Of a DNA stretch of 18,949 bases, positions 1 to 18,949 are shown piece after piece. The stretch is taken from the NCBI GenBank assembly GCA_002269645.1, contig NIVC01005238.1, positions 1 through 18,949 of the forward strand, in the 5' to 3' direction. Position 1 is the stretch's first letter. Each line of letters opens with the position of its first letter. The stretch comes from Macrostomum lignano (lineage: Eukaryota). The translations under genes were made by a program, and so were the position numbers. The notes below the pieces were generated by a model. The model was not told the origin of the DNA, searched no databases, and saw only the letters and a program-made list of their open reading frames with translations.

Positions 1-26
1 GTTGCCAGGTACGAACTTGTTCGGGT
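1..26 (-). CDS. 5' end of a PAN/Apple-like exon of a second WSC-PAN paralogue (rest of the exon is left of the window)
   Basis: Bases 1-37 are identical to 12400-12436. This includes the TTTTTTGCAG acceptor (AG at 27-28) and the exon start encoding (H)PNKFVPGN. Confidence 0.75.
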
Positions 27-695
27 CTGCAAAAAAGCAATGAAACTCAAACTGTAGGCTGTAGGCTGTAGGCTGTAGCTGTCATGCATGACGTCGGCCG
101 CCTGATCGGTTAACGGCTTTATTTTTGCAGATTTGATTGCATTGCTCAGAGAAATCACAAAACGGAGAGAATTTAACTTCAAGCAGCGTTCATCAGCACG
201 TCTAGAACATGGATCCCGAACAGCAATCCGACGGCGGCGCGACTTTATGATGACGTATGACGTCGTTTTTCGTAGATTCGTGACGAACTTTTAGCGAACC
301 AAGGATTAGAGTCGACTTATAAATTGACTTGAGTCGAAAATGTATTTCATGGCTGGGATAATTTTGAGGTAGCTAATATTTAAGCTTTCAGCCCGCCAAT
401 TATTTTAAAAGCCTTTAGAATTTCCACTTCAGCTGATTGGATCGGTTGCTAATAATACAGCGCATTGTTGATCTTAAATGCCAACGCTATTTACTCTAAT
501 TGCACTTCAACCTCCTATCAAGCGCCATTAATTTATTTCCGTAGCATTTAGACTGAAAATAATCGATTTGGGATCCATTGTTGCTCAATTAATGAAAGCA
601 GACTCAAGCACCAGGGGGTCCTTGAATCAGATTCGTTGCAAATGAAATTTAGGGTAATTGGATGGGCCGATGCCAGGCAGCGGACAAGCTGCTCC
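1..695. other. Diverged duplicate of the WSC-PAN locus (intron plus upstream flank) with the WSC exon missing
   Basis: 1-270 aligns to 12400-12645, e.g. the shared GAATTTAACTTCAAGCAGCGTTCATCAGCACGTCTAGAA. About 360-695 aligns to about 13345-13648, e.g. GCCAATTATTTTAAAAGCCTT and GGCCGATGCCAGGCA.CGGAC.AGCTGCTCCC. About 700 bp of the right copy, including the coding exon, has no counterpart here. Confidence 0.75.
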
Positions 696-2229
696 CGTCG
701 TAGCTACGAACTACGTCGTAGCGTCGTAGCCATGCACATTTAAGTTGCTATATTAGGCTGTCTTAATAACTACGCATCAGCTACAGTCTATACATGTAGC
801 TCTTCCGTAGTTCCGGTTTAGCCCGATCTCTAACGGCTATGAGTCAGCGTTTAAATGATCGAATTCTGGTGCACACAGCTGATGCGGGGATGAGCTCCTT
901 CATCATTTTGACTAAGACCTGGTACATCCAGTTCCCTTGTCCCTAATTCCCTCTGGTACCGTATTGTGACGTTGCTAGTTTAAGGTGGTCCTGCAAAAGG
1001 GCCGTTGGACTATAGTTTCCCTTGCAATTTCTCATTTAAATTTCTCCAATAGTTTATTTTAACGTTTACTTGTAGTAGCGTGCAAATAATCTGTATCAAT
1101 TGCTAATTCACTGTGTATTTGGTAGACCTTGCGTTCGTCTGTAAATTTTAGCACGATCGATAATTTCAAGTTCCCTCGCCAGCCAATGAAAACTCTCCGT
1201 GTTTTATGCTAACCTTTCTGCGCTCTTTATTAACCCCCGCCTGGCGGCGGGCTGGGGGCCTCCTCACTTCTGGCTTCGGGCGTCTGGCTCTCGTTTTCCT
1301 TCTCTCTCCTGGCTGCCTCGAGCCTCCTTATCTCTCGCCATGGCTCCTCTGTCTGGGCCAGCCTGTTTACACACTGTACTCCACTGTGTACTGCCACGGC
1401 TAACGCCACTCTCACCGCTACTTATCTGCCTGTTTACTTACTACTCACTGCCTCCACTGTGCTCATCGCCATCACTCACTACGTTGCGTCGCCATCACTC
1501 ACTTCGCCTGCCACTCGACTTCATATTCTAATCACTTTCAAAACCATTGTTGCAGCCGCCAGTGCCCAGAACACTATAAGTTTTGTATTGACATTAACCA
1601 GTCTAATATTGATCTCGACAATAAACTAGCTACGGCAGTTTCCTGCCCTTATACACCAAGTGCTCCGCTACACAATCCGCTTCGCAAGAACTGACTTCGA
1701 TTCATTTTGGGACTACAACAACTTACGACAATTCTCGTCAAACAGCCCTTTTAAGGGTCATAACCTCTACGCCAATAACGTGACAGTATCCACAATAGCA
1801 GACTTTTCCCGAAAGAATCACTCACTCGTCTTGAATTGACGCTTCGTCTACTAATCATGGCCGGCGAGAAAGAGCGCGTGGGGTTTTCCTGATAGCGACA
1901 AGTGTTTCGAGGGATCGGTGTCCCTCGCCTGCCGCAAACTTATTCATACGTATATTTTCACCGTTACACCCAAAACCGATTGGCCACGCATAGATCGCAA
2001 AAACAACATAATATTATCGTAGCAAGTTGAGGCGCAGCTGGGCCAGAGATAATTGGGGGGAACGTCAGGGGGCAGCCCAGCCAATCAGACTGGGTGCGCA
2101 TCAAGCTGGGGCAGACAAATGGGGGTTGCGAGACAAAACGGGGCTGGGTAAACAACTTATGGGTGGGGTAAGAGTGCAGCTCCGGGGCACACCTGCCTGA
2201 GAGTCAAAGATTGCTCGTCAGTGCAAATG

Positions 2230-2455
2230 CATGTGTATGTGCTACTTTATAATTAAATGTATGTGCTACTTTATAATTACACGTATGTGCTAATGTATAA
2301 TTACATGTATGTGCTAATTTATGATTACATGTATGCGCTACTTTATAACTACATGTATGTGCTACTTTATAATTACATGTATGTGCTACTTTATAATTAC
2401 ACGTAAGTGCTAATTTATAATTACATGTATGTGCTAATTTATAATTACATGTATG
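2230..2455. repeat. 24-bp minisatellite, about 9 units, consensus ACATGTATGTGCTACTTTATAATT
   Basis: Tandem units can be read directly and show few substitutions. Confidence 0.95.
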
Positions 2456-2756
2456 GCGTCACACCAAAAACTTCTCAATAATCTCGAGCGCTTTCGGAAA
2501 GTCAATTCGATTAGACTGAACTGAGCGCTGATTCTTTATCTGACCCACTATATAGCTGCAAGGTGGCCAGGCTCTCACGTGCTCACGTGCTGCAATTGCG
2601 TGGCGCATCCGATGGCTGTACGTGTACAGCTGGTACAGTGCCGGTACTTTTGAGGATCGCAACTCCAACCCCGTACATGTACATATATTTCTACCGCGCC
2701 TAGCTCAGAGCTGCTGCCGTATCAAAGTAGTGAAATCTGGAACCAAACCTAACAGA

Positions 2757-3154
2757 ACTCTAAGCTAACCCACTCGGCTAGCAGTTCTACTCCTGGACAC
2801 AATAATACTTGTTGACATGCATTGTTGGTATTTTGTGATGAGTGCGAAGACAAAAATCCAGTAAATGGTAAGGAGGTGCGCATCATGACGACATGTACTA
2901 GCAGAGAAAACTTTGATACCAATTTGTATTTTGAGGAAGTTTAGCATGAATATATAGTTTATAAACATACATTTATAGTTAAAAAATACTTAGCCAGGAT
3001 ACATGTACCGTCAGGGGAAAATTTCGGATCAAAAAGTGCAAATTTGGTGAAAATCGGTTGAGCCGTTTTTTCTGAAATCAACCGCATACCTATAGATACC
3101 GACGTAGAAACAACTCATTTTACTAGTTAAATATATAATATATATTTAATAAGA
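2757..3154 (-). mobile_element. Probable non-autonomous Helitron-like element
   Basis: The minus strand starts A|TCTTATTAAATATATA, matching the Helitron 5' TC after A. It ends in a short hairpin GCTAGCC-GAGTG-GGTTAGC followed by a degenerate CTAG-like end. The internal plus-strand motif AAATTTGGTGAAAATCGGTTGAGCCGTT resembles animal non-autonomous Helitron families (pattern recognition, not a database hit). Confidence 0.4.
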
Positions 3155-3756
3155 TTAAAAGCTCGTTCCCACAGCTATCAAATAAAGCCAAACTTAGAGT
3201 GATCACACAGCTTGTCCATATTTTTCCGTCGCTTTGTACGAGTACATCAATGGCGTGTTTGATGATTGATGACTTTAGTTGATTGCCGGTGTGAACGAGT
3301 TTTAAGAATCCAAAAAATAAAATCTTCAGATGGTTGACCACATGGTTAAAATACTTAACGACAAATAAAAGTTTAGGAAAAGGGCAAGTGAAAAAAAGGT
3401 GTCCTAAATCACTAAAGCAGCTAGTACTATACAAAGCCATTCAATATCACTGAAATTTAAAGATGAAATTTTTAGTAAGTTGAAAGTATGACGCCACTAA
3501 AACAAAGCAGTGGGCCACTTGACGGCGAAGCCACTTCAGATAAAAAATTCACATTCCAAGCTGATGGGAGACTTTTGAGTTTTAACTGAGTTCAGCTACA
3601 GGTTAAAAGCTTAAAGGAACCTCAAAACGATCGAGAAGTGGAGAATATAAACTTTAAATCGAAAACCATGCAGATCAGGGTGCCCGCATAGCAAAATTAC
3701 GTATCCAATAGAAAGTTGGACGTCTCCGATACGTAACTTTTTTGGTTGCAGGAACG

Positions 3757-3918
3757 TCCCTGACACTTATCCAATTTTTATGATCCTCTAAAGAAGCTCG
3801 TTACTACAAAAATGGTGGAATAAATAATAATAATAAATAAAAGCATTATCTGTTCACCATTTTTGTAGAAACGAGCTAATTCTTTAGAGGATCATAAAAA
3901 TTGGATACGTATCAGGGA
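3757..3918. repeat. Foldback/MITE-like inverted repeat (arms about 62 bp, AT-rich TAAA loop)
   Basis: TATCCAATTTTTATGATCCTCTAAAGAAGCTCGTTACTACAAAAATGGTG (3768-3817) pairs with CACCATTTTTGTAGAAACGAGCTAATTCTTTAGAGGATCATAAAAATTGGATA (3855-3907). Looser pairing extends outward. Confidence 0.85.
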
Positions 3919-4712
3919 TACATTTGGATACGTTTCAAAAAACAATTTAAATTTGATGTTTGGCCAATTGTTTGAAGTTCTAACATAGCTAGTATAGACT
4001 GCGTAACCCGAACCGTGCACGCATATTTGTCACTATATAAATAAATAAATCCGCCAGTCGGTCAATTAATCATCTCCTACATGCAAAGGCTTCCCGTTTG
4101 TAACGGGTCATTTACGTTTTACAGGTTAATTAAATCGTCCCACTTTCTTAAAAACGTTTTGCTTAAGGTCACATTTAATGCGAATTGCTACTTTTAAATT
4201 GGGATTCATCAAAATTACTGCATTTACGAGCGTACATCGATATATGAAGTCACGAGAACAGAAGACTTTAGTAAGCGACGATGAAATAGAGTTAAGTTTT
4301 GAGATAGATAAATACGCGTTGATCGAAAATAGACCAGGGCTTCGTACCGCAAGACTAGTGTAAATAAAAAACTGAAAAACGGTTTAAGAAGACCAGAAAA
4401 AATTACATCAAACCAGAGGCCAATACACCAACACCCTGTAGAAAAATAAAAACTAAGTTTTCAAGTCAATTAAAGCATCCCCGTTGCTGACAAATAGATA
4501 GTGGGCTTGTTAAAATCGGATTCAAGTATTTTAAATTATTGGCCGGCATTACAAGGCCTATAGGTCCAAAATCAACACTTTTAGGCCACATAAGCAGTGT
4601 ACCCTTACCTAAAAGTTAATTTCCAGTGCGAAATACAGTAGAAACTTGCAGAGTTGTTATATTATAAATTATCTTTGCTAAAAAAAGAAAATCAACGAAT
4701 AACATTTGTTAA

Positions 4713-4718
4713 TTTATT
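4713..4718 (-). promoter_or_regulatory. Candidate polyadenylation signal of toxin-GTPase copy 1
   Basis: AATAAA on the minus strand about 95 nt after the TAA stop. The flank is AT-rich, so a chance match is possible. Confidence 0.3.
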
Positions 4719-4813
4719 TCCCCAAGCACAAATATTCCGTCCCATATCAAAGCAAAAGAAAACAACCAGAGTAGAACGAGTTAGTCACAAATTGTCAATT
4801 GTCGTGATGATCG

Positions 4814-7800
4814 TTAATTGTCTTCACTTATGGCTCTCTCACACAGCTGCAGTGTCTCAGAAATCCTATCTCCGAATGGATCCTCAATTTCTCGGGTCTG
4901 GGCGATGATTTCGGCAGACTGGCGAGCCTCCAACAAGTACTTCTTGCGCTCCTGCCAGTTGGGCTTGTGCTCCATCTCCTCGCTGGCGATGAGGTTGTCA
5001 ATGTACTCGACCACGCTAAGGGGGCATGGCCGAAGTGCCCATTTATCAAGCTCGTTGAGACACTTGCGGATAGTGACGATGTCGTATGTTAACTCGCTGT
5101 GCTTCTCCTTCAGATCTTGTCTCATGGCTGAAATCAGCTGCGTTTTATCTTTCCTATCTTTCACACTCTCTTCGTACTTTTTACAGATCGTCTCTACGTC
5201 CACAAGTTCCTCTTGCGTGGTGTGCACGAAATAATGATCGGCTGATTCGTGCTCCTTCCAGTTGCACTTCTTCGGACATACAGTGCAGCTGCCAAAAACA
5301 GTGATCGCCCGACACTTCCTCTGAATATCTTCGGGGCCCCTGGAGCAGTCATTGTGACAGGTGTTCTCACAGACCTTGCAGATCATGGCGTAGCGGCCTG
5401 GTCGAGTCATCTTCTTCACTTTCTTCGGCACCATCACTTTTCGTTTCTTGTTCATGTCCGCATCCTTGATCACAGCGTCCAAGGTTTTTACCAGCTCAAG
5501 CTCTTGTTCAATGCAAGAAATTTGATCGAGACACGCATTTACTTTGAATAGAAGCTGGTCCTTCACGTTTTCCAGCCTGTCACGGTGTCTTAAAACGTCA
5601 CGAGTAATTTTCAGTGATACGCTTTCTGACTGCTTCAACCAATTGAACAGCTCGTCATAGCTTATAAAGGATTGCTCCCAGTTGAGATGGTTTTGCTTCA
5701 GCATCATTTGGTGTTTTCGCTCTTCAGTCGAGCAGTCATGACTTTGTGGTTTTGATTCTGAGTTGTCGGAAAAAAGAACACCGTTGTTGAAGCTCTGGTA
5801 ATTTTTACAGGGTACATTGTCCTCTCTGAGTGCAGCTAAGGCCTGTGGCTCACCGCTGTCAGCGAATGTCAAGATCGGAAGAATTAACTTCTCAACATCC
5901 TTTGCGAATAGCGACAAAATGAGATTAAAGATATACTTCTGTGGCGCAGTTAGTCTGTTCTGCGACGCCTTCACAACAAAGCCGATCGCGTGCAGGACGC
6001 CTGTCATTCTCGGGATGCAGCTGCTATCTTCTCCGAGAATTCGAGCAATTTTCTTTACCGCTCTCTGATCCTCCTCAAAACCCCGAGTGTCTCCGAAACC
6101 CGGGGTGTCGATGACAGTCAGTGGGCAGTCCAGAGCACTCTTTCCAGAGCAGCATCCTCCTGAAGTGTCCACCGGGTGAAGGGTGTATACTGACACCTTT
6201 GACGTCTGAGAGTGAGCCTGATTGGGCTTACTCATTCGCTTAGAGGCAGTGGAGCTTGACTCTAATGAGCTGGGATCAACTTCAGAAATGAGTCTAAGCC
6301 GAAAAGGATCCTTATACTGCACTTTATAGAAAGCATTGGCGATTGCATTGACAAACCTGGACTTTCCCGTTCCAGTCTCGCCCACGACTAGCATATATTT
6401 TGAATGCTCTGTCAAGTTTTCCTTGCTCTCGCCAATATCAAACGACTCTGGGCAGTTACAGTCGCCCTCGGACAATGGCAGCTCTCAGGCAGCTTTAGAA
6501 GGCGCTTCTTGAGCTGAAAAATCTCCCCAGGAAAAGTTTTATCACCCTCTTTCTTCAGCGGCTTTGACTCGCACAGGACCTTACGAGCGTACTCGGAGCA
6601 AAGCTTCAGAGGATTAGTCTCGAAGTGAACACTCTTGGATTCCTCCGAGTCGCCAAATGCAGTCATCGTCGAGATCTTGGCTTTGAACTTTGTGCCTGGT
6701 TCGAGGTCGTGAATATCAATGCTCGTTTTGTCAGTTAATTTTGTGAAGACCAAGCACTTCGAGCTCTTGCTCGCCTGGTAGACTTTTATTCTGTAATGTA
6801 CTGGGAGACCAAGGTCACACTTCACAGCTGACCACGAAAGCTTTGACGTAGTAGATTTGATCTCTTCGCACACAATATTCTTCGGTGCAAGTGGCAGTTC
6901 CAGAGGACACCACTGTTGCTCTTTTCTGTACAGCTTGGTGATTTGGATCCGATTACTGTCGCTACGTGTAGACTCGCTTACCAGAGCAACAGCCACCTGC
7001 GAACCAAGGATGCATTCGTTTCTTTTGGCAACTTCGATTAGCTCATTCGCGAGTTTGTTTAACGTGTCATGATCTTCCGAGTCAATCCAGGTGTCGGCGC
7101 TTCGTTCCACAAAAAATGTATGAGTCACTTTATTCAGAAAAAGCCTCAAGTCCTTCAGGTAGGGAGATGCATCTGGTAAGGTCAGCTGAGCCAGTAACTT
7201 CTGATTGGCTGAACTTTCAAACTGCTGTTTGTCTATTGAATCCTTGATGAGCTTGATGCCCACTGAACTCAGTTGAGCTGCCAACGCCTGCAGAGCGATG
7301 CACTCCCTCTCTCGATTTGAAATCCAGCCAAGAAGTTGAGCGGGTCCGAACGGAGAATTTTCTCGGTAATTGGTCAACAGCTTGGCGATTTTGTCGCATC
7401 CTTTCTTGTGCTCTCGAGCACCTGGCAGAGTCTTCAACAGCTTTTCCGTGTATCTGGTCTTCATCTTCTCAACTAGGTTTACAAACTCTGAAAGCTCTGC
7501 GCGCTGCGTCTGCCAAGGACTCGATGCCAGCACTCGTTGCTGTGTTTCGGCCGCGCTGATGACATCATTGAGCTTCTGAAGATAGTCGCCAGCTTCGTTC
7601 AGCTGCTCATCCGTGATCTTCCGCTTCAGCATAGCCACTTTGCCTCCAAGCGTGCTCAGGGGTGTCAAGTATGCCACCAGTGGAGTCTTGGCTCTGTCGC
7701 TTGAGAACCTGCTCACACAGCCGAACGCCTCTCGCAAGGTCGTCGGTGGAGATTCAACATCGAAGTCACCGAAGTAGCGGCACTTCACCCTGTCATACAC

Positions 7801-9533
7801 GCTGTCGTCAAAGTCGCTGCTGTACTTGGGCGGCGCGTCGGACTCACTGAAGGCGGCTTTCAGAGCGGACACCATCGACTCGAGACTCTCTTCCGACGCT
7901 GAGGCCTCGCCAAGCAGCTCTCTCTCCTTTTCGAACACGAGAAAGGCATTGGCTCCGAACTTGATGCCCGTCACCACATGGGTCGCCGGGGTGTCCGCCA
8001 GCTGTTGTGGAAACTCGACGCCTCCACTTGGCTCCAAGTGCAGCTCGTCGAACCTTGTGACAATCCGGTAGGCCAGAGTGACTTCCTCGGAGTTGAGACT
8101 GGTCTTTGAGTCGTTCAGGTACCGACCAGAGCCTTCGACCTCGGTGTTGCCACACAGGAAGCCGAGCTTTAGATCCGGACTGAGTTTGAGCAGCTTCGCC
8201 TTGTCCGAAAATGTGCACTCTTTTTCGATGCTTATAGTTGGAGTTGGACTCACTTCCACTTGACTTTTGGTTATGTTGAGCTTTGCGGCTTGCGACCACA
8301 GCTTGGTCCCGGTGATGAAGCGGTCGTTTCGCGCATCGTACAGCGTGCCGAGAGCAACGGGTCGGCCCAGACAGGCCGTGCGGAGGTCCTTGTCATGAGT
8401 AGCTTCGCTACTATCTAAAATAACGAAATTGTAAGTAGTTCTACATGCAGTGTCAATAGTGCACTTATTAAGATGTCTCCACTTCTGCACCCAGCAACAG
8501 CATGTATAGCAAGGTTGAATGCAGCTAATATTTAGCTCAATGCACCTATTACGTCATCTATAAAGCATCCACCACCTGGCTGGCTACATTGCTGTGAGTT
8601 AGGCATATTTCTTTGACCATAACTTTTATAGTTGCTTCGCTGTTTTCAAAGTGTTCGGCAGCCGATCGTACTACTGCTGACAGACTCATCGAACCTAGGT
8701 TTTGCCACCTGTTTTAATTGTAAATTGGGAGTCACTACCGAATAATTGAAAGTGTGTTTGAAAAACTGATGACTGGAGTATTTTGAGGCCAATTTAATTA
8801 GATCCAGACAGATAGTCGCTGTGTTTATTTGCGATAGATTCACAAGAGGCAGCTTATGGATGATTAAATTGACAGGATGTCAGAGTAAGCTGAAATACCG
8901 ATTGCTAATTCCATGTGAAATTAGTCCTTCTTTCATACTACTCAATAGTATGAAACGTTCAGAATCAGAGAAATACTTAATTAGCCTAAATTAGCCTACA
9001 AAACTTACCAGTAAACGCGTTGAATCGCGTACTATTAGAATCTGCAGTTTTATCAGGCAAGCCCTGCTCCCAAACAAACATGCTTAAACATACGAGTAGA
9101 AAATTAACACCCAATAACAGTGATTAACTAATCTCGATATGATTTTCAGTGAGAGTGATACTATAACCCCACACGGTCATGAGCTCAACTGGACTACTTT
9201 TTACGCAACAAGCAAGCTGAGAAGTGTCGGGATCGATACGAGCTACAAAAGTGAATGCCTAAATGGCAGAAGCTTACTCAGTACAAGTCTGCAAGTCGGC
9301 TTAATGAGCCAATTTTTTGTTTCTGCCCTACTTGATGCTTCTTTTCTGCAGCAAGAATGTTGCATAAAAAGCTTTCTTCACTGAACACCGAAAGATGCAT
9401 GTAAGTTAGCCACTCGTTTTGAGGGCTGCGGAGTGTGCAAGCGACTGCGTATTACATCAGGCTGCTCACCAGTCGATCGACCTCTGTTGAACTTCTCCTT
9501 CAGGCTCATCTTGACGGATGTAACCTTCTTCAT
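4814..9533 (-). CDS. SNTX/verrucotoxin-like MACPF/CDC - FN3 - septin/AIG1-like GTPase fusion protein, copy 1 (join 9533-9470, 8414-4814; one 1-bp frameshift near 6470; about 1221 aa)
   Basis: ORF 6412-8490 carries the SNTX-family start motif ACLGRPVALGTLYDARND and ATHVVTGIKFGANAFLVFE, then FN3. ORF 4814-6475 carries GETGTGKS, SQT, DTPG and TFAD. Copy 2 is continuous across the junction (LPESCQCPADHCICPESFDIG), showing that the two ORFs are one gene. Exon lengths 64+3601+1 = 3666 nt = 1222 codons. Confidence 0.85.
5800..6400 (-). other. Septin/AIG1(GIMAP)-like TRAFAC GTPase domain (copy 1), approximate bounds
   Basis: G1 GETGTGKS (6359-6382), G2-like SQT, G3 DTPG (6098-6109), G4-like TFAD (5858-5869), plus HAIGFVVKASQNRLT..QKYIF. 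Confidence 0.85.
6617..6894 (-). other. Fibronectin type III domain (copy 1)
   Basis: PLAPKNIVCEEIKSTTSKLSWS...HYRIKVY...IHDLEPGTKFKAKISTMTAFGDSEES..VHFET follows the FN3 P..P.N...L.W...Y...L.PGT.Y...G.S pattern. Confidence 0.85.
7640..8385 (-). other. Stonustoxin-like MACPF/CDC pore-forming domain (copy 1), approximate bounds
   Basis: Motifs LGRPVALGTLYDARND, LKLGFLCGNTEVEGSGRYLND, THVVTGIKFGANAFLVF and CRYFGDF..PTT..EA match the stonustoxin/verrucotoxin/cytolytic-toxin family N-terminus. Confidence 0.85.
9470..9533 (-). CDS. Predicted first coding exon of copy 1 (MKKVTSVKMSLKEKFNRGRST + G|)
   Basis: The exon has acceptor CCTCAG (AG at 9546-9547), ATG at 9533 and donor G|GTGAGC at 9469. 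It ends in phase 1, which matches the phase-1 acceptor TTTTAG|AT at 8415-8416. Copy 2 has an acceptor (TTCAG|AT, 18917-18918) at the identical codon position. Confidence 0.65.
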
Positions 9534-9793
9534 TGTCGCTCGCACCTGAGGTCAGGAAAGTGCACGCGCTCTGATAAAGTTTCAGTTCTACTTGTACTTG
9601 TACAGAAGTAGCTACTTGTATTGGTGTCCAGGGTTCCTGAAAAGTTAGAGCTCTGAAACTTAATGAGCGAGTTATGAGGTATATTCCAATCTTATTTTCA
9701 TGCAGAAAAAAATAAGTCTACAGGAAATGTTGCGCAAGTCTAAGACAAGCAAAAAGAAAATGATAGCATACAGTAATAAATAACACTAGCAAA

Positions 9794-9895
9794 GGACAGG
9801 AACACCCAGTCATGGACAGAAACACCCAGCCATAGACAGGAACACCCAGCCATGGACAGGAACAATCAGCCATGGACAGGAATAGCCCCAGCCAT
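9794..9895. repeat. Short array (about 5 units) of the 20-bp GGACAGGAACACCCAGCCAT minisatellite
   Basis: Same unit as the edges of the 14105-14841 array. Confidence 0.9.
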
Positions 9896-10822
9896 CGAGA
9901 AGAACCTTCAACAATAGATGGAACAGCCAAAAGTTGAAAGCCCAGAAGAAAACTATAGAAAGCTACAGCCAAGGATTAAAATTGAACTCACAGGTAGGAA
10001 AATTGCAGATTTCCTTTTCAAAAGCAGACAAGATCAAAGTGAAATCAAGCCGAACCAAAGCATTTGCTCCGCAAGCAAGCGCTGTCCGCTAAAAGCTAGA
10101 CTGTATCTGTCCCTATTGTACTGTCAGTGAAAAAGGAACTTCCGTTAAACCCAAGCAATCTCCCCAAGCTGCAAATCAATAAGTGCGTCTGTCTGCACAC
10201 TCGCATGCGTGCACAAGCAAAGTGGTAATACACAATCCGACGTACAGTTCCTTGTAAGTTCCTCGTTCCTTGCTTAATCGTCTGCTACCACAAACGAGAA
10301 CCTCCACCCCGTCCATTCCGCTTGTCTTTCGAAATTGATTGAGGCTGTGTACCCGCTACCCGCTTTGAGAAAACAGACGGTGGCAATGCACATTCAAATT
10401 CTCGGAGACAAGTGTCGATTATTGAGCTATTTGAGGAAAATAAGTTAACGAAAAACAAACAGAGCTGTCTCAATGTTCAGACTGAGTTAAGTCAGATTGA
10501 ATTGGATTAAAATTGGACAGTGTCTGGGGCGAAAGGCCAAACTTATTTGCTTATCTACAATCAGTTAGTGAGTGTGACTTGGGCGTAGGTTAAAAAGGGA
10601 TGTTATTAACCTACAGATAACGACAGTTCACGCTTACTTGCGCATCCGAGGTCTTTCCGTCATAGACACCAAAAGAACAGACAGATCGTACGAGCGTACT
10701 TAATCTGCAGATATTCCTCGTTTTGCTCCCAGTCTTCATTCTTCAGTGAGGATTGGCCATTGCACTGCACTGGTAAAGAAAGAGCCCAGGAAATGAGCGT
10801 GAGCCGTCATATATGTAGGCCA

Positions 10823-10976
10823 TAGGGTAATATATCAATACCATAGACATTGTGAGGGCAGAAAGATGGAGAATCCGAGGGTCGCGAATAGATAGATAGA
10901 TAGATAGATATAGAAGCGACCCTCGAATTCTCCATCTTTCTGCCCACACAAGTCTATCGTATCGACTTATACCCTA
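10823..10976. repeat. Foldback element with a (GATA)n microsatellite loop
   Basis: 10851-10885 and 10916-10950 are inverted repeats matching at 33/35. The 30-nt loop is GAATAGATAGATAGATAGATAGATATAGAA, and imperfect pairing continues to about 10823/10976. Confidence 0.9.
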
Positions 10977-11093
10977 ATTTGCAAGGACGGGCAGAAACTC
11001 CATTTCTTGCCCTGTCTATGGTAACTCCGTACTATTTGAGTGTGAATCTTTTCGAATTTTTATTTCCTGCCCGCTGCCAATGTCTATGGTAAA

Positions 11094-11799
11094 ATTCACG
11101 GGTTAATGCTTCGTATAAGCATTAACCTGAGTTATTAACCTAAGTGTGAACCTGAAGATGCGCACTGTTGTGCGAAACGCGTCGTAACTAATTTAATATT
11201 GATGAATACAGAATTCCCAATTACCTCAATGTCGCGCGATCCTGTTTCAAATAGCGATGAATGCTGGCACGAAATCCAACCAGACTGTTGACACTGTAGG
11301 AATTCCCATCTTTACGCTTTAGAGAAACAAACCCGAGTCTCAGGTATTGCACCAGGTATCGCTCTGGCATGCCTTCGATGTTGTCCGGAAGACCATTAGA
11401 CTGCAGAAACTGCTTAAATTGCAGTGCAACGTGCTGCCTTGTCTTCACATCAGTTGATTGCGTTCGAGCAGTCGTCTCCACGGCTTGGATACCGTGAATC
11501 TCAGTTTCGTTGAGCTCTCGAAAGTCATATTCAGAAGCTTGTTCAAATGATAGATCTGCAAGATCTTCCAGTAGAGCATCAAATTCCGGATCCAAAGCTC
11601 TGCTGGTTCCAACTCCTGGAACCGGCAATCCAGTCCACTGGTCAATTAAAATCGTTCTTGCCCAGCAAATAGCTTTAAGAAATCCATCTCGTCATGATGC
11701 GAACCGCTTATAACGTCACCGTGAATCGATTTCAAGTCAAGGAGAGACATGTATCGTGATAGCACTTCTATGAGACATACGAAGCATTAACCCGTGAAT
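11094..11799 (-). mobile_element. Crypton-like (tyrosine-recombinase DNA transposon) deletion derivative bounded by 23-bp inverted repeats
   Basis: ATTCACGGGTTAATGCTTCGTAT at 11094-11116 and its exact reverse complement at 11777-11799 enclose a Crypton-like ORF fragment. Confidence 0.6.
11221..11628 (-). pseudogene. N-terminal (pre-catalytic) fragment of a Crypton/DUF3504-type tyrosine recombinase
   Basis: FRELNETEI...T...T...VALQFKQFL and SLKRKDGNSYSVNSLVGFRASIHRYLK match the R-K.DG..Y...SL......I.RYL signature of animal Crypton/ZMYM/QRICH1-type proteins. The ORF stops before any catalytic R-H-R-Y region and has no real ATG. Confidence 0.7.
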
Positions 11800-12192
11800 A
11801 CTATACATGCACCGTCGTCCGAGAGGTAACAAAAGTCGAGCTCCTGCAGGTCTATATATTGGTTTCCAAAGGAGCGCTACTTTTATAGGGGCGCAACTTT
11901 TTATGCTGCAATTTTGTCGAAGCGAGTTGGGGGTGACCCCTTGGCAGCTACAGTACAGTGCACGTGTAATTTACATGCACATTGGTAAGAGATCGACGTT
12001 GTATGCTCTTTCCAATTTTATTAATTATTCAAACTGAATGCACAGTGGCATACATGTATCACAATAGTGATACAGGCCGAAATCGCTTAGCAAAAGTTTG
12101 CAATCTGTAATCGATTGGATCGAGGAATTCAGAACCATTACATGCGGATTCGAATGGACATTTTCGGTGCTACTGTGCGAGCGCGGCCCCTC

Positions 12193-13285
12193 TCAGCCGC
12201 GAACGTAGAACTGCAGGCCCTGAATGCTCAGCAGAGCAGCCGGAATGGCGGGCACGTCCATGAAGTAGCACAGGTGCAGCTGCTGGGAGAATAGCACGGC
12301 CTGGCAGTCCCCGGTGCACAGGTAGATGCAGGTAGCCAGGCTGAAGCCGCTGGCAGACCGGTAGCTGATCCGAAACGCATTCAGTTTGAGATAGGACTCG
12401 TTGCCAGGTACGAACTTGTTCGGGTCTGCAAAAAAGCGATGAAACTCAAAACTGTAGGCTGTACGTCCATGACGTCTGGCCGTCTGACCGGTAAAGGCTT
12501 TATTTTTACAAAATATTTATCGCTCAGAAAAATTACAAAGCGAAGAGAATTTAACTTCAAGCAGCGTTCATCAGCACGTCTAGAAAAAGGATCTCGAACA
12601 GCAATCCGACGTCGGCGCGACTTTTTGATGACGTCGTTTTCTGTCGAAGCAATGCCAAAAAGTATGTATTTGTCATCGAACGTCGATAAACCTCGAGAAC
12701 GTTGGTCGACGCTGTCGACATCGGATTGCTGCTGTACGGGGGTGGCTTCAAGACGTATCTTGTACGCACATATGCAACCAGCTGTACGGGGATGGCTTCA
12801 AGACGTGTCATGTCATGCACATCTGCAACCAAAAGCAAAACATGCTCACGAGTGTAGTGCTGCCGGAACACCGAGTTACGAAAAGCGGATTCACATTTCT
12901 GAGTGATGTTACCGCTGCATGTTTTAAAGCAATCACTCTCACTCAGTTGTATTTGCCCGTAGGAGCTCCCACAGAAGCAGTGAAAACCGGCCTGAACTCC
13001 AAAGTACGGGTGACTGCCGAGAGCGCACAGGGCGCTGCACAGCTCGTGTGTCATGCTGTGGCTGGAGGCCCTGAACAGCTCTAGTTGATGAAGACCGACA
13101 CCGCCAATCTTGGTGATGTCGTAGTTCCTCTGGTCAGTCATCTGCCACAGACCGTTGACGGCGTCCAGGTAGCAGCCGACGTAGGTGAAGTTGCGGCCCC
13201 TGCCGGCGCTCGAGGCGATGCCGATGACTCGACAGGCGAGCAGCAGGCCGGCTGCCAGGAGGATGAAGCTGTTCAGACATCGCAT
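12193..13285 (-). CDS. Secreted WSC-domain + PAN/Apple-like protein (join 13285-12850, 12425-12193; 222 aa)
   Basis: Signal peptide MRCLNSFILLAAGLLLACRVIGIASS and WSC motifs YVGCYLD...MTHELCSALC...YFGVQAGFHCFCG...C...CSGN..QKC....RNSVF. The donor C|GTGAGC at 12849 and acceptor TTTTTTGCAG at 12426-12427 are both phase 1. Exon 2 reads HPNKFVPGNESYLKLNAFRISYRSASGFSLATCIYLCTGDCQAVLFSQQLHLCYFMDVPAIPAALLSIQGLQFYVRG*. Total 436+233 = 669 nt. Confidence 0.85.
12731..12831. repeat. About 50-bp tandem duplication inside the WSC-PAN intron
   Basis: GCTGTACGGGG.TGGCTTCAAGACGT...GCACAT.TGCAACCA occurs twice (12731-12780, 12781-12831). Confidence 0.85.
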
Positions 13286-14104
13286 GATCAGCTGCGTCTT
13301 TGTGAAATCAAGGATTATTGACTTACCTAAGACTTGAAATTATTTTTTGAGTTGGCTACGGATTCGAGCTTTATTAGCGATCTCAAGCCAATTATTTTAA
13401 AAGCCTTAAGAGTTTCTACTTTCAGAGCATTTGAAATCCCAATGCTATTCATTAAAATTGCCATTCAGCCCTCGTTTTTGATTTTTATTTAGAAAAATAA
13501 ATCAAATTGAGATCTATTGATGCTCAACAATTGAAAGCAGACCCAAGAACCATGTGGGTCCTTAAGCAGGCGATGTTTAGATTTTTCGAAAAAATACAAT
13601 TTTTGGTAAATTAGATAGGCCGATGCCAGGCAACGGACGAGCTGCTCCCATTATATCTACTCCGAAATTCATAATGCGTTTACGATGTACGTCAGGTTAG
13701 CGTGAAACACAACCCTGCACAGATTTATAGGCAGGTATGGTTAACATACATTATAGCTAGTTAGTGCACTCGTATGCAAGTAGCATGCATGCAGTTCTGT
13801 GGTTCCGGTTATCCAGTTATTCCGGTTCATGGCTATGAGGAAGAGTTTAAACCTAACGGAACATTTGGTTTCTTGCTTTAGTGGCCAGGCACTTAAGAAG
13901 GCGTTCATCTATACTCAGAAACTGCTCCATGGTGTGATGTCTATACTCGTACAAGCTGTTGAAAACCGCGGATTTTTTAACACAATAGATCAGAAGACTT
14001 TCTGAGACTATGCAAACACTTACAGCATCAGGACAGTAATCTAACTAAATAATTTTTAGTATATAGGAAGATGAGATTAATTTGCAGCTGTTAAATAAAA
14101 TGAA

Positions 14105-14841
14105 AAACACCCGGCCATGGACAGAAACACCCAGCCATGGACAGGAACACACAGTCATGGACAGGAACACTCAGCCATGGACAGGAACACTCAGCCATGG
14201 ACAGGAACACCCAGCTATGGATAGAAACACCCAGCCATGGACAGGAACACCCAGCTATGGATAGAAACACCCTGCTATGGACAGGAACACCCAGCTATGG
14301 ATAGAAACACCCTGCTATGGACAGGAACACCCAGCTATGGATAGAAACACCCAGCTATGAATAGAAACACCCAGCTATGGATAGAAACACCCAGCTATGG
14401 ATAGAAACACCCAGCTATGGATAGAAACACCCAGCTATGGATAGAAACACCCAGCTATGGATAGAAACACCCTGCTATGGATAGAAACACCCAGCTATGG
14501 ATAGAAACACCCAGCTATGGATAGAAACACCCAGCTATGGATAGAAACACCCAGCTATGGACAGAAACACCCAGCTATGGATAGAAACACCCAGCTATGG
14601 ATAGAAACACCCAGCTATGGATAGAAACACCCAGCTATGGATAGAAACACCCAGCTATGGATAGAAACACCCAGCTATGGATAGAAACACCCAGCTATGG
14701 AATAGAAACACCCAGCTATGGATAGAAACACCCAGCTATGGACAGGAACACCCAGCCATGGACAGGAACACCCAGCTATGGACAGGAACACCCAGCCATG
14801 GATAGAAACACCCAGCCATGGATAGAAACACCCAGCTATGG
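14105..14841. repeat. 20-bp minisatellite, about 37 units, consensus GGATAGAAACACCCAGCTAT
   Basis: Near-perfect tandem units with no spacers and one single-base insertion at about 14701. Confidence 0.97.
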
Positions 14842-15477
14842 TAGTTGCACAAAAAGCCCATAAATTAAACCTCCAGCCAAGTTAAAACCCAACTCGCAGT
14901 TTGAAAGAAATTGCATATTTATTTCCCATACTGGACAGGAGTGAGAGCGCACGTTTTTATTTATTGATTTTTGACTGCGTTTATAACGGCTATAGCAATA
15001 ATATTATGATGTAAAAAACATCTAAAAAGTTAAACGGGATGATGACGGATAAAAACAGTTTGACTGAGAGCGCTTTAAACAGAAACACGCTTAGCACAAT
15101 ACAAATTATCAAGGAGTTAAAACAAAAAAGAATGCTTCATATAACGAGTAGCTAACGATTGGTTGATGAATGATGCTGGCCTAAAGTTAAAAACTGAGTT
15201 TTAATTAGGTAGGCATAAATAATTTAGTAGAGTATTCATAAGCTCAAAAATGTAAGCCTTCAAAGAAATTATGAATTATTACGGTGCAACTTATTATTAT
15301 ATCGCGATTACTGAGAAGTCGAAGTTAATTAGGAGAAATTCGAGAGTAAATTACATTGAAAAAGCAATTGTCTTAATAATAATAAAGCAGCCGCAAATCT
15401 GGAATGAACTGAGTGAAGATTAAGCGTAAGCTACACTTCGTGAATATAATATCAGTTTAGTTATAATAGCAGTCAAA

Positions 15478-15752
15478 TTAATAATAATAATACTAAATAC
15501 TTCGTTACACCTGCCCTAATGGGCAGATGTGCAACCGACAGCTCAGCCGCAGCCATTGCTTGGCGCATCTGAAGGCTGCGTACGGCTGTTCAGTCCAAGG
15601 ACTGGGGGTCGCCACACCCTCAATTACCCCAGCTAATGCTGGCACCCATTTTACAGCTGGGTGAACTGAAGCAGTGCAGAATTAATTGCCTTGCTCAAAG
15701 ACACCATGCAGTTGTTATAGTGGTATCGGGAATCGAACCCACGACCTTCAAG
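15478..15752 (-). mobile_element. 5'-truncated tRNA-derived SINE with a CORE/MIR-like central domain and (TAT)n tail
   Basis: The minus strand reads AGGTCGTGGGTTCGATTCCC (B box), then GTCTTTGAGCAAGGCAATTAA...CTTCAGTTCACCCAGCTGTAAAATGGGT (CORE-like), and ends TATTATTATTAT. No A box is present. Confidence 0.75.
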
Positions 15753-15830
15753 GTAACTTTTCAAGGTAAAAAACTTTTTAAGTTTCAAAAGCTATTCAAG
15801 ACTATGCAAAAAGCCAATTAGGTTCAGGGA

Positions 15831-18800
15831 TCACTTGGGCTCACTCGTGGCGCTCTCGCAGCGCTGCAGCATCTCGGCGATCTTGTTGCCGAACGGATCT
15901 TCGCCACGGCGAGTCTGGGCGATCATTTCGGCAGATTTTCGAGCCTCTGCTAGGTACTTGACGCGGCTCTGCCAGCCAGGCGTCTGCTCCATCTCCTGGC
16001 TGCTAATGAGGTTATCAATGTACTGCACTACGCCTAGAGGGTACTGCCGAAGTGCCAGCTGATCAAGAGCTTCAAAGCACTTGTGAATTGTCACAATGTT
16101 GTACGTGAGCTCCTGGTGCTCTGCCGAGAGTTCTTCTCTCAGAGTTTCAATCAGTTTCCGTTTAGCCTCCCGATCTTTGACGCTGAGCTCGTACTTCTCA
16201 AAGATCTCCGTCACGCTGACGATCTCCTCCTCGGTGGTGTGCACGAAGTAGTGATCCGAGCACTCGTGCTCCTTCCAGCTGCACTTTTTCGGGCACACGG
16301 AGCAATTGCCAAAGAGCGTGAAAACTCGGCACTTTTTCCTGCTTTCTGGAAGTCCCCTGGAACAGTCGTTGTGGCAGGTGTTCTCGCACACTCTGCAGCG
16401 CATCACGTAGCGACCAGGACCTGGAGTCTTCTTCACCTTTTTCGGCACCATCACTTTCCGAGTCTTGTTCATGTCGGCGTCCTTGATCACGGCGTCCAAT
16501 GTATCCACGAGGTTGAGCTGCTCTTCAAGTAGAGCCATTTTATCGAAGCACACCTGCACCTTTTCCCACATCTTCTCCTTTGAGTGCTCCAGCGTGCTGC
16601 GCTGCCTCAAAACATTTCGAGTGGTCTTCAGGGAGATCGCATCAGCTTTGCTTAGCCAATCGAACAGCTCAGAGTAGCTAAACCAGGCCTGCTCCCAATC
16701 GAGCTGGCTCGCCCGAAGAGCCATTTGATGCTTTTCTCTTCTGCTGAACAGGCACCCTGCGGTTCCGGCTCTGAGTTGTCGGAGTAAATCACGCCATTGT
16801 TAAACTTCAGGATTTGCTTATACGGTACATTGTGCTCGCTTAGAGCAGCCAGTGCCTGTGGCTCATTGCTGTCTGCAAATGTCATGACCGGAAAATTATC
16901 TTTGCGATATCCTTTCCAAACAGGGATAGAACCTGATCGAAAATGTACTTTTGTGTCGGGGTCAGTCGGTTTTGAGACGCCTTAACCACAAAGCCAACGG
17001 CGTGCAGGATGCCCGTCATTCCTGGAATGCAGGTGCTGTCTTCTCCGAGCACTCGGGCGATCTTCTTAACGACTCGCTGATCCTCTTCGAGACCCCGGGT
17101 GTCTCCGAAGCCGGGAGTATCGATGACGGTCAGCGGGCAGTCCAGGGCACTTCTGCCCGAGCTGCACCCGCCGAGGTGTCCACCGGATGAAGAGTATACA
17201 ATGACACCTTGGACGTCTGAGAATGCGCCTGGTTAATAATTTGACTTATTCTATTTGAAGCAGTGGATTCCAACGCCGAACATTCCGGGGCGGTTTCAGA
17301 AATCAAGCGCAGTCGAAAGTTGTCCTTGTATTCAACTTTGTAGAAGGCATTTACAAGCGCGTTGATGAATCTGGTTTTTCCTGTGCCAGTCTCGCCCACA
17401 ACCAGCAGGTACTTCCCTGGACTGCTTTTGCACGCGCCAATGTCGAATGACTCAGGGCAGATGCAGTGGTCCGCAGGGCACTGGCAGCTCTCAGGCAGCT
17501 TTAGGAGTCTCATTTTGAGCTGGAAAATCTCGCCAGGAAACGCTTCGTCGCCTTCTTTCCTCACGGGCTTCGACTCGCACATGATCTTTCGCACGTACTC
17601 GGAGCAGAGCTCCAGAGGCAGCGTTTCAAAACGGACGCTACGGGACTCAACTGAATCCCCAAACGGAGTCACTGTAGAGATCTTGGCCTTGAATTTGCTA
17701 CTTGGATCGAGCTCGTGAACGTCAGTAGTGACTTCGTCAGTGAGTTTCGTGACGACAAGCTCACTCGAGTCTTTTTTGGAGGAAACGTAGATATTAATTC
17801 GGTACTGCACAGCTGGCGCAAATTCGCTCTTCACGGCCGACCATGAAAACTTGGCCCGAGTGGACTTAATTTCCTCGCATGACAGATCCTTCGGTGGTGG
17901 CGGAATCTCCAGAGCGCACCACTGGTGTCCCTTTCTGTACTTTTTTATAATTTCGATTCGGTCCGTATTGTTGCGACCGGCTTCGCTAATTAGAGCTGCA
18001 GAAACGGTGAATTTATCGTCTGTTCTGTTTCTTTCAACAATGGACACAAGCTCGTTCACCAGTACAATGATCTTTTCATGCTCTTCAGTGTCATGCCAGG
18101 TATCCCGGCTCCGCTCCACAGTAGAGTAATTGCTTTCACCATTGAGGAATCTCTGAAGACTTTTTAAATAGAAAGATATCGTTGGAAAATTAAGCTCAAC
18201 TAGAAGCTTCTGTTCAGCTGATTTTTCAAACTGCTGTTTGTCTGTGGCATCCTTGATGAGCTTGATGCCCACTGAGCTCAGTTGAGCTGCCAACGCCTGC
18301 AGAGCACTCACCTCTCCTCCAGTCTGATCGAAATCGAGTCAAGAAGAAATTGAACGGAAATGTCCCGGATTGGTCTCGCTCAGAGTAATTTTCATCGGAC
18401 ACCATCACTGCTCTCTTCCGAGCTGAGCCTGCAGAGCTCTCTCCCTTTTCCGGACTTGGCTCCGAACTTGATGCCGTCACCACATGGGTCGCCGGGGTGT
18501 CCGCCAGCTGTTGTGGAAACTCGACGCCTCCACTTGGCTCCAAGTGCAGCTCGTCGAAACCTTGTGAGCAATCCGGTAGGCCAGAGTGACTTCCTCAGAG
18601 TTGAGACTGGTCTTTGAGTCGTTCAGGTACCGACCAGAGCCTTCGACCTCGGTGTTGCCACACAGGAAGCCGAGCTTAGATCCGGACTGAGTTTGAGCAG
18701 TTTCGCCTTGTCCGAAAATGTGCACTCTTTTTCGATGCTGATAGTTCGAGTCACTTCCACTTGACTTTTGGTCATGTCGAGCGTCGGCGGCTTGCGACCA

Positions 18801-18916
18801 CAGCTTGGTCCCGGTGATGAAGCGGTCGTTTCGCGCATCGTACAGCGTGCCGAGAGCGACGGGTCGGCCCAGACAGGCAATTCGGAGGTCTTTGTCTTTG
18901 AAGGAACCGTGGGCAT
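15831..18916 (-). pseudogene. SNTX-like - FN3 - GTPase copy 2, main exon (frameshifted and with an internal deletion as assembled; pseudogene or consensus error)
   Basis: It is colinear with copy 1 from the acceptor (18917-18918; DAHGSFKDKDLRIACLGRP) to the stop (15831). There are 1-bp losses at about 17170, 16890 and 16733, several indels in 18396-18800, and about 480 bp missing at 18306-18395. No in-frame stop was seen in the reconstructed 15831-18305 frame. Confidence 0.75.
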
Positions 18917-18949
18917 CTGAACAGCAAAGTAGTGTGGAAACAAGAATGT

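Follow-up and report, generated by a model that had tools for sequence, protein, structure and literature searches.

The window analysed here is the whole 18,949-nucleotide (nt) stretch of Macrostomum lignano contig NIVC01005238.1 (assembly GCA_002269645.1, positions 1 to 18,949 of the forward strand), and its principal element is a two-exon gene on the minus strand (9533..4814) whose reading frames place a stonustoxin (SNTX)-type pore-forming half ahead of a GTPase half. An earlier note, made from the letters alone, had described this gene as a pore-forming toxin without a signal peptide, fused through FN3 to a septin/GIMAP-like GTPase, and thereby as a candidate GTP-gated intracellular lytic effector. 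In this study, the gene model, domains, relatives and selection of the locus were investigated using profile searches, structure prediction with AlphaFold2 (AF2) and sequence comparison. The locus is a real two-exon gene of M. lignano, with its ATG at 9533..9531 and its stop codon at 4816..4814. Its features are as follows.

9470..9533, minus strand: exon 1, 64 nt, starting with ATG and holding 21 codons plus 1 nt (MKKVTSVKMSLKEKFNRGRST); basic, hydrophilic, without a leader
8415..9469, minus strand: intron, 1055 nt, with GT donor GTGAGC and AG acceptor TTATTTTAG
8414..4814, minus strand: exon 2, read as two long open reading frames (ORFs) in different frames
7648..8388, minus strand: MACPF/CDC domain of stonustoxin type (Pfam MACPF_SNTX), with the ATHVVTGIKFGANAF stretch at 7986..7942, two helical clusters at the positions of transmembrane hairpins TMH1 and TMH2, and the Gly of CRYFGDF
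7264..7611, minus strand: FAT-like helical bundle (Stonustoxin_helical; Pfam 33 bits against a cut-off of 27), predicted helices 268-383, aligned to SNTX up to residue ~400
6898..7260, minus strand: diverged thioredoxin-like region, from co-linearity, a weak hhalign match and predicted alternating strands and helices
6622..6888, minus strand: FN3 domain (Pfam fn3 37.5 bits against a cut-off of 25), with sequence matches to FN3 domains in PDB and a Foldseek target-normalised template modelling (TM) score of up to 0.92
6404..6621, minus strand: Cys-containing linker from FN3 to G domain, which holds a 1-nt deletion (CC- in ...LPESCHCP/EGDCNCPESF...) and has low AF2 confidence
5735..6403, minus strand: P-loop GTPase (G) domain of the septin/AIG1/Toc superclass, from motifs, predicted fold and profile matches
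5462..5728, minus strand: first long stalk helices after the G domain (AF2 helices 243-275 and 282-331 of the C-terminal half, at high confidence in the predicted local distance difference test, pLDDT)
5201..5449, minus strand: beta-rich insert with a Cys/His cluster at 5380..5249 (CKVCENTCHNDC...C...CTVCPKKC...H), predicted beta strands 338-418
4814..5197, minus strand: C-terminal stalk helices and stop codon (AF2 helices 420-543), family-conserved

The two longest ORFs of the window (8490..6412, 692 aa; 6475..4814, 553 aa) follow one another in the same orientation on the minus strand, overlap by 64 nt and differ in frame. Inside its ORF, no in-frame ATG precedes the conserved stonustoxin-like N-terminus (LGRPVALGTLYDARND), and a separate 5' exon supplies an ATG at 9533; the gene was therefore modelled as exon 1, intron and exon 2. 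The acceptor TTATTTTAG, which ends at 8415, is a polypyrimidine-AG, the two exons join in frame (G + AT, giving an Asp codon), and the N-terminus encoded by exon 1 resembles in kind that of the annotated M. lignano protein P0001. With the missing base restored at 6470/6469 the product has 1221 aa, and the coordinates, strand content and length of about 1220 aa given in the earlier note are borne out. The domains follow in the order MACPF/CDC of stonustoxin type, FAT-like helical, diverged thioredoxin-like, FN3, G domain and a helical stalk with a Cys/His-rich beta domain. Hydropathy analysis of the repaired 1221-aa protein (Kyte-Doolittle, 19-residue windows) revealed no hydrophobic leader, as the note had read: the best window in the first 40 residues reached 0.33, and the best in the whole protein 1.56, below the membrane-spanning level.

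By sequence and predicted fold, the N-terminal half belongs to the SNTX-like branch of the MACPF/CDC superfamily. The Pfam MACPF_SNTX profile scored 32.6 bits against a curated cut-off of 27, and phmmer against all PDB chains gave stonustoxin beta with an expect value (E) of 1.1e-32 (4wvm_B, residues 3-379) and stonustoxin alpha with E 2.2e-31, in alignments co-linear over ~390 residues (residues 3-395). The ATHVVTGIKFGANAF stretch aligns to SNTX ATHVVIGILYGANAF, with the ATHVV..GANAF stretch conserved, and the Gly of CRYFGDF aligns to SNTX-beta G209; this SNTX glycine (alpha G208, beta G209) is required for prepore formation (review PMC8704401). Among 39 relatives T144 and G153 are invariant, and H145, C211, G215 and D216 occur in at least 90%. 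An AF2 model of the N-terminal 647 aa, built on these 39 relatives (pLDDT 80.8; predicted template modelling score, pTM, 0.76), contains long strands (108-124, 145-163) and helical clusters (68-100, 177-208), as expected for MACPF/CDC. Foldseek of this model against PDB placed stonustoxin on top (E 5.2e-28 for 4wvm_B and 1.8e-26; TM 0.55-0.58), with FN3 domains next. The SNTX-like MACPF/CDC domain proposed earlier is thus supported by profile, sequence and model, and the comparison with stonustoxin that had been suggested, by HMMER and by AlphaFold with Foldseek, returned the long central strands, the two helical clusters and stonustoxin as the top match.

The region that follows the helical bundle is the weak point of the domain assignment. 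No Pfam domain was detected in 7260..6898 even at E 10, and hhalign against the Thioredoxin_11 regions of relatives gave a weak match (63% probability, E 7e-5); 33 of the 39 co-linear relatives match Thioredoxin_11. The thioredoxin-like region of the earlier note can accordingly be kept, tentatively, on co-linearity, the weak hhalign match and predicted fold. The FN3 domain is present as the note had described. No PRY or SPRY match was obtained with Pfam in the repaired protein, whose C-terminal 620 aa consist of FN3, G domain and stalk. In domain order, FN3, GTPase and helical region therefore stand where the venom toxins have PRY-SPRY, again as the note had claimed. PRY-SPRY is the surface-recognition domain of SNTX and stands where CDCs and perforin have their membrane- or target-binding Ig and C2 domains (PMC8704401).

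The G domain carries the G1 motif GETGTGKS (6382..6359), the G3 motif DTPG (6109..6098), a G4-like TFAD (5869..5858) and a candidate switch I Thr in SQT. In an alignment with 88 relatives, G-x-x-G-x-G-K, the Thr of SQT, D-T-P-G and T-F are invariant and A-D occurs in at least 90%, so that the three motifs named in the note fall on conserved columns of the family; the alignment of the C-terminal half has 32 invariant columns in all. R167 in ...RLT... is likewise invariant across the family and may correspond to the arginine finger of the GIMAP conserved box, and TFAD resembles the septin AKAD G4 motif. The Pfam profiles stop just short: AIG1 scored 26.9 against a cut-off of 27 in the window protein (30.5 in the paralog P0001; 32 of 39 relatives match at E up to 1e-3), and Septin stayed below threshold with 24.0 against 26.2, over the first 76 of 280 profile positions only. 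A single-sequence search of all PDB chains gave no match to the C-terminal half. Its AF2 model (pLDDT 87.5, pTM 0.76) was matched by Foldseek to GIMAP7 first (3zjc_B, E 2.4e-7) and then to Toc34, GIMAP2 (fourth), Toc33 and septins, Toc34 and septins being nearly as good as GIMAP7. A profile search of PDB sequences placed septins first (E 2.5e-7), with matches confined to short P-loop and G3 stretches, followed by Toc34 (5e-4), and no GIMAP occurred among the 60 matches listed. Because the domain lies just under the Pfam AIG1 and Septin cut-offs it was treated as a separate family, which sequence and model place within the septin/AIG1/Toc superclass and outside its named families. The label 'septin/GIMAP-like' in the earlier note is thus apt for the superclass only.

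The G domain is followed by a stalk of ~300 aa with an embedded Cys/His domain, for which no Pfam family matched. The cluster has the pattern CxxCxxxCHxxC-x10-C-x8-CxxCxxxC-x4-H from sponge to lizard; among the 88 relatives C359, C362, C366, H367, C370, C381, C390, C393 and H402 are invariant and C397 is present in at least 90%. The cluster probably binds two metal ions. The long coiled coil of the note corresponds to the long predicted stalk helices, which are interrupted by the Cys/His-rich beta domain that the note did not mention.

The same architecture is found well beyond this locus. Full-length searches used a 1190-aa query, and the species named here form an incomplete list. When 1.84 billion cluster representatives were searched exhaustively with HMMER for the whole protein, 3856 matched, and at least 16 representatives outside the Mlig008863 cluster are co-linear in one stretch over essentially all 1190 residues. 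Depending on the domain, 32-39 of 39 aligned relatives match MACPF_SNTX, the helical domain, Thioredoxin_11, fn3 and AIG1, and both a stonustoxin head and a G domain occur in 93 of the 304 proteins fetched. The Pfam order MACPF_SNTX, helical, Thioredoxin_11, fn3 and AIG1/Septin was recovered in reedfish XP_051781755.1 and carp A0A8C1R0U4; in crayfish XP_053648736.1 the order is unchanged, but no thioredoxin match was detected. In some members, eight FN3 repeats separate the head from the GTPase. The fused architecture was also seen in two M. lignano paralogs of greater divergence (PAA80612.1, PAA60539.1), and its range covers at least three phyla (flatworm, crustacean, ray-finned fish). The remark in the earlier note that similar architectures occur in other animals was therefore correct and understated.

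The C-terminal module has its own distribution. At least 584 relatives of the GTPase-stalk module were found (30-37% identity), and the 118 non-Macrostomum matches listed span 84-98% of the query. Among the named sources of the module are the sponge Amphimedon, Porites corals, the bivalves Mya and Dreissena, lizards and teleosts, the teleost proteins bearing names of the type si:ch73-170d6.2; all are annotated 'uncharacterized'. On this sequence evidence the ~550-aa GTPase-stalk-Cys/His module is a pan-metazoan family of its own. Its N-terminal heads vary: none, FN3, B-box with FN3, or SNTX-type thioredoxin with FN3. B-box and FN3 heads were seen in the bivalve Mya arenaria (P0034, P0045), and two or three tandem G domains in Porites coral proteins (P0124, P0165); the module has therefore been combined with different N-terminal heads. 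In a rough neighbour-joining tree of the module (263 sequences) fused and unfused forms interleave, with 35 parsimony changes, a pattern with several possible causes: the toxin head may have been gained and lost repeatedly, gene models may be truncated, or the tree may be poor.

Literature searches on the fusion, on the gene identifiers and on Macrostomum with stonustoxin retrieved no paper that describes or tests the fusion. The parts were known before, and public protein sets already show the combined architecture; the fusion itself is undescribed in the literature found. Longer sntx-like genes have been recorded on stonefish chromosome 6 (PMC10566576), and a 3804-bp 'stonustoxin subunit alpha' alignment appears among horizontally transferred fish genes (PMC12107551).

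The two halves of the main copy lie in different frames in the window, and the gene might on this ground be taken for two neighbours, one stonustoxin-like and one a GTPase, misread as one. Alignment of the junction with the tandem paralog near 17480 shows that a single base is missing from a Pro codon of the main copy, at 6470/6469. The junction reads ...CTG CCT GAG AGC TGC CAT TGT CC- GAG GGC GAC TGT AAC TGC CCA GAG... in the main copy and ...TGC CAG TGC CCT GCG GAC CAC TGC ATC TGC CCT GAG... in the paralog. The frames thus differ by exactly one base, the paralog ORF runs unbroken through the junction, P0001 is continuous over 1218 aa, relatives from other taxa are co-linear over the whole length, and the G-domain ORF has no ATG before M27, a few residues ahead of the P-loop. 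The two-gene artefact was rejected on the one-base frame difference, the unbroken paralog ORF and the co-linear relatives, and we regard it as hardly credible. The toxin and GTPase halves, as the note had supposed, are joined, and the paralog ORF and P0001 establish this independently of splicing.

The tandem paralog itself occupies the end of the window.

15831..18949, minus strand: decayed tandem paralog, which runs off the window end; from blastn within the window and ORF fragments

Its ORF fragments match P0001 and P0002 by eye, and its ORF 18311..17130 is unbroken from the thioredoxin-like region through FN3 into the P-loop. About 530 bp (main-copy 7336..7865) are replaced by about 50 bp, a net loss of ~480 bp that removes the C-terminal portion of MACPF together with the beginning of the helical domain. 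Its G domain is frameshifted, and one of the frameshifts is shared with P0002, an annotated truncated protein of 944 aa. For the main-copy protein, the close database proteins among the matches listed are two from M. lignano, BOX15_Mlig008863g1 and g2, with 73-77% identity, and the paralog fragments correspond to these two by eye. Window positions 18346..7982 are 99.86% identical to contig NIVC01002895.1 (GCA_002269645.1), which apparently has a ~70-bp duplication inside the MACPF part of this gene (contig 22392..22526 against window 8046..7982), lacks the ~480-bp net deletion of the upstream copy, and ends at window 6725, 255 bp before the frameshift site. The window is either another haplotype or a homeolog of the NIVC01002895.1 locus, or the same locus in another assembly.

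Substitution patterns differ along the gene. Compared with the coding sequence of the intact paralog P0001 (L002 11016..14606), codons 1-400 of the main gene (8414..7200), which cover MACPF and FAT, have a synonymous divergence (dS) of 0.03-0.29, whereas dS in codons 400-1200 (7200..4814) is saturated (1.3 to >2.7) with a ratio of nonsynonymous to synonymous divergence (dN/dS) of 0.05-0.2. Because dS is mosaic and dN/dS is low, the two genes are read as old duplicates under purifying selection in which gene conversion, to judge from the substitution pattern, has homogenised the pore-forming part and remained confined there. The gene lies in a cluster of tandem copies that evolves by birth and death. 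A defence or toxin family with fast turnover usually shows just this combination of tandem duplicates, gene conversion, structurally different copies and decay.

The locus is decaying, with a frameshift in the main copy and a broken tandem paralog adjoining. The missing base belongs to a short C run (CC in place of CCN), and the frame beyond it is open for 552 codons with all family-invariant residues kept. The lesion is therefore taken to be either real and very recent or an assembly error. If it is real, this copy would be a recent pseudogene in which translation ends 19 out-of-frame codons after FN3, leaving a stonustoxin-sized product of at most 688 aa without the GTPase, and the family may function via other copies. 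Such a reading has a considerable minority share of our confidence. It draws on the frameshift, on the clearly decayed adjoining paralog with its deletion and frameshifts, on NIVC01002895.1, which differs in structure and has other lesions (the frameshifted P0002 and the ~70-bp duplication in this gene), and on the absence of the downstream ORF product from the record. It is opposed by the 552 open codons with their invariant residues, the dN/dS of 0.05-0.2 and the intact start codon and splice sites; moreover, a base missing from a short C run is a common error of long-read assembly.

Comparison with characterised proteins indicates what the parts may do. Stonustoxin alpha/beta of Synanceia horrida (PDB 4WVM) and the fish SNTX-like proteins have homologous MACPF/CDC and FAT-like domains and a thioredoxin-like region at the same position, and the ATHVV..GANAF stretch and prepore Gly are kept here. 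They differ in having PRY-SPRY in place of FN3, G domain, helical stalk and Cys/His domain, in length (~700 against 1221 aa), and in a thioredoxin-like region that is too diverged for Pfam in the window protein; there is no sign here of a heterodimer or of venom use. GIMAP/AIG1 proteins (GIMAP7 3ZJC, GIMAP2 2XTP) are the best structural match of the G domain, with helices after the G domain in both and a G3 region that the DTPG-F-G-D-T motif of the window protein resembles, whereas the window protein has in addition the pore-forming head and a C-terminal extension of ~300 aa with the invariant Cys/His cluster. Septins and Toc34/Toc33 belong to the same GTPase superclass by profile and structural matches, but the sequence matches cover mainly the P-loop and G3, and the window protein scores under the Pfam threshold for Septin. 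In GIMAPs, Toc GTPases and septins alike, the G domains mediate dimerisation or polymerisation that depends on the bound nucleotide and involves arginine fingers (bioRxiv 10.1101/2024.03.25.586683). Two further systems are analogies. GBPs and IRGs combine a GTPase with a helical stalk and assemble on membranes that enclose pathogens, with homology only at the P-loop fold; MPEG1/perforin-2 is a MACPF protein of intracellular compartments, with homology only at the MACPF superfamily and, unlike the window protein, with a leader and a membrane anchor. The mechanism proposed below would unite the principles of both in a single protein. MACPF/CDC proteins oligomerise on the membrane to form a prepore, and two helical clusters then unfurl into a beta-barrel.

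Taken together, the most likely explanation, which we hold with modest confidence and which is unproven, is a fused family in which the GTPase module would be the switch that targets and assembles a pore-forming effector of defence. The protein would be made without a leader and be soluble in the cytosol. On binding GTP the G domains would dimerise or oligomerise, as those of GIMAPs, Toc GTPases and septins do, and the stalk with its putative metal-binding domain might contact a membrane or ligand, loosely like the PH domain or paddle of dynamin-like proteins. Self-association dependent on GTP could then concentrate and orient the MACPF heads into a prepore, with insertion next, and the FN3-GTPase-stalk module would thereby take the role of PRY-SPRY. 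The GTP-gated intracellular lytic effector proposed in the note is plausible as a candidate. A more specific version, argued by analogy, is a 'GTP-gated perforin', an ancient cell-autonomous defence or cell-death effector of animals, whose GIMAP/septin-type G domain on a dynamin-like stalk would assemble by nucleotide on an intracellular membrane (such as a pathogen vacuole or an organelle) and so trigger pore insertion; we consider it speculative and, as a whole, rather unlikely.

The site of action bears on a further explanation, in which the protein would serve defence or predation as an exported toxin that leaves gland cells without a classical leader, and the GTPase-stalk would serve storage, oligomer assembly or target binding outside the cell. 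Secreted stonustoxin also lacks a signal peptide, so the absence of one does not discriminate between the two; the closest characterised relative is in addition a venom toxin, and the PRY-SPRY that is replaced here mediates binding to the target-cell surface (PMC8704401). On the other hand, GTPase cycling needs millimolar cytosolic GTP, the GTPase-stalk module is widespread without a toxin head in non-venomous animals from sponges to lizards, and carp, reedfish and crayfish, none of them venomous, have the fused form. Export is accordingly judged improbable.

We give similarly little credence to a MACPF domain repurposed for a non-lytic role, as in astrotactins and Torso-like, within a scaffold for GTPase-driven membrane remodelling or trafficking. 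Non-lytic MACPF proteins are known (PMC5483515), the Pfam match reaches only the first half of the MACPF_SNTX profile, and inspection by eye shows a second helical cluster that is acidic and has little amphipathic character. But the MACPF stretch and the prepore-linked Gly are retained, and tandem expansion with decay is typical of defence genes. The MACPF-FAT part also appears to be in use, because it is near identical between the old paralogs (dS 0.03-0.29, saturated elsewhere).

Several points weigh against the preferred reading of a GTPase-switched pore-forming effector. The frameshift lies exactly between FN3 and GTPase and, if real, prevents the main copy from making the fused protein; an exact protein look-up of the downstream ORF from its first Met returned no record. 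The MACPF_SNTX match spans profile positions 6-159 of 301 only, and the second helical cluster, the TMH2 region, was modelled at pLDDT 57-67. The absent leader is no proof of cytosolic action. Binding and hydrolysis of GTP, oligomerisation, metal binding and pore formation are predicted properties, and the literature searches retrieved no functional data for any family member.

The remainder of the window contains repeats and short ORFs.

14105..14841: 20-bp minisatellite array, 36.8 copies, ~1 kb downstream of the stop of the upstream copy
9794..9895: related 20-bp minisatellite array, 5 copies, ~260-360 bp upstream of the main ATG
12557..13285, minus strand: ORF of 242 aa between the two toxin-GTPase copies, with a hydrophobic N-terminus and a WSC domain (Pfam E 2.2e-11)
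11221..11628, minus strand: ORF of 135 aa, without a Pfam match
2234..2455: 24-bp tandem repeat, 9.2 copies, in an AT-rich stretch without a long ORF

Minisatellite array length is different in NIVC01002895.1.

In perforin-like proteins, targeting to the membrane normally falls to passive binding domains such as C2, Ig or PRY-SPRY. A conserved family with an enzymatic, oligomerising GTPase at the targeting position would, if true, represent a different way of controlling pore formation, and it would link two pillars of innate immunity, namely immune GTPases and pore-forming effectors. In mammals this work is divided between GBP/IRG coats and separate pore-formers; here, if so, a single polypeptide would perform it. 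The family also has relevance for annotation, in particular for genes labelled 'stonustoxin subunit alpha-like' in fish genomes: the long ones (e.g. the 3804-bp alignment, PMC12107551) are probably of the fused type and not venom toxins. M. lignano and zebrafish-type models are genetically tractable, and the idea is therefore directly testable.

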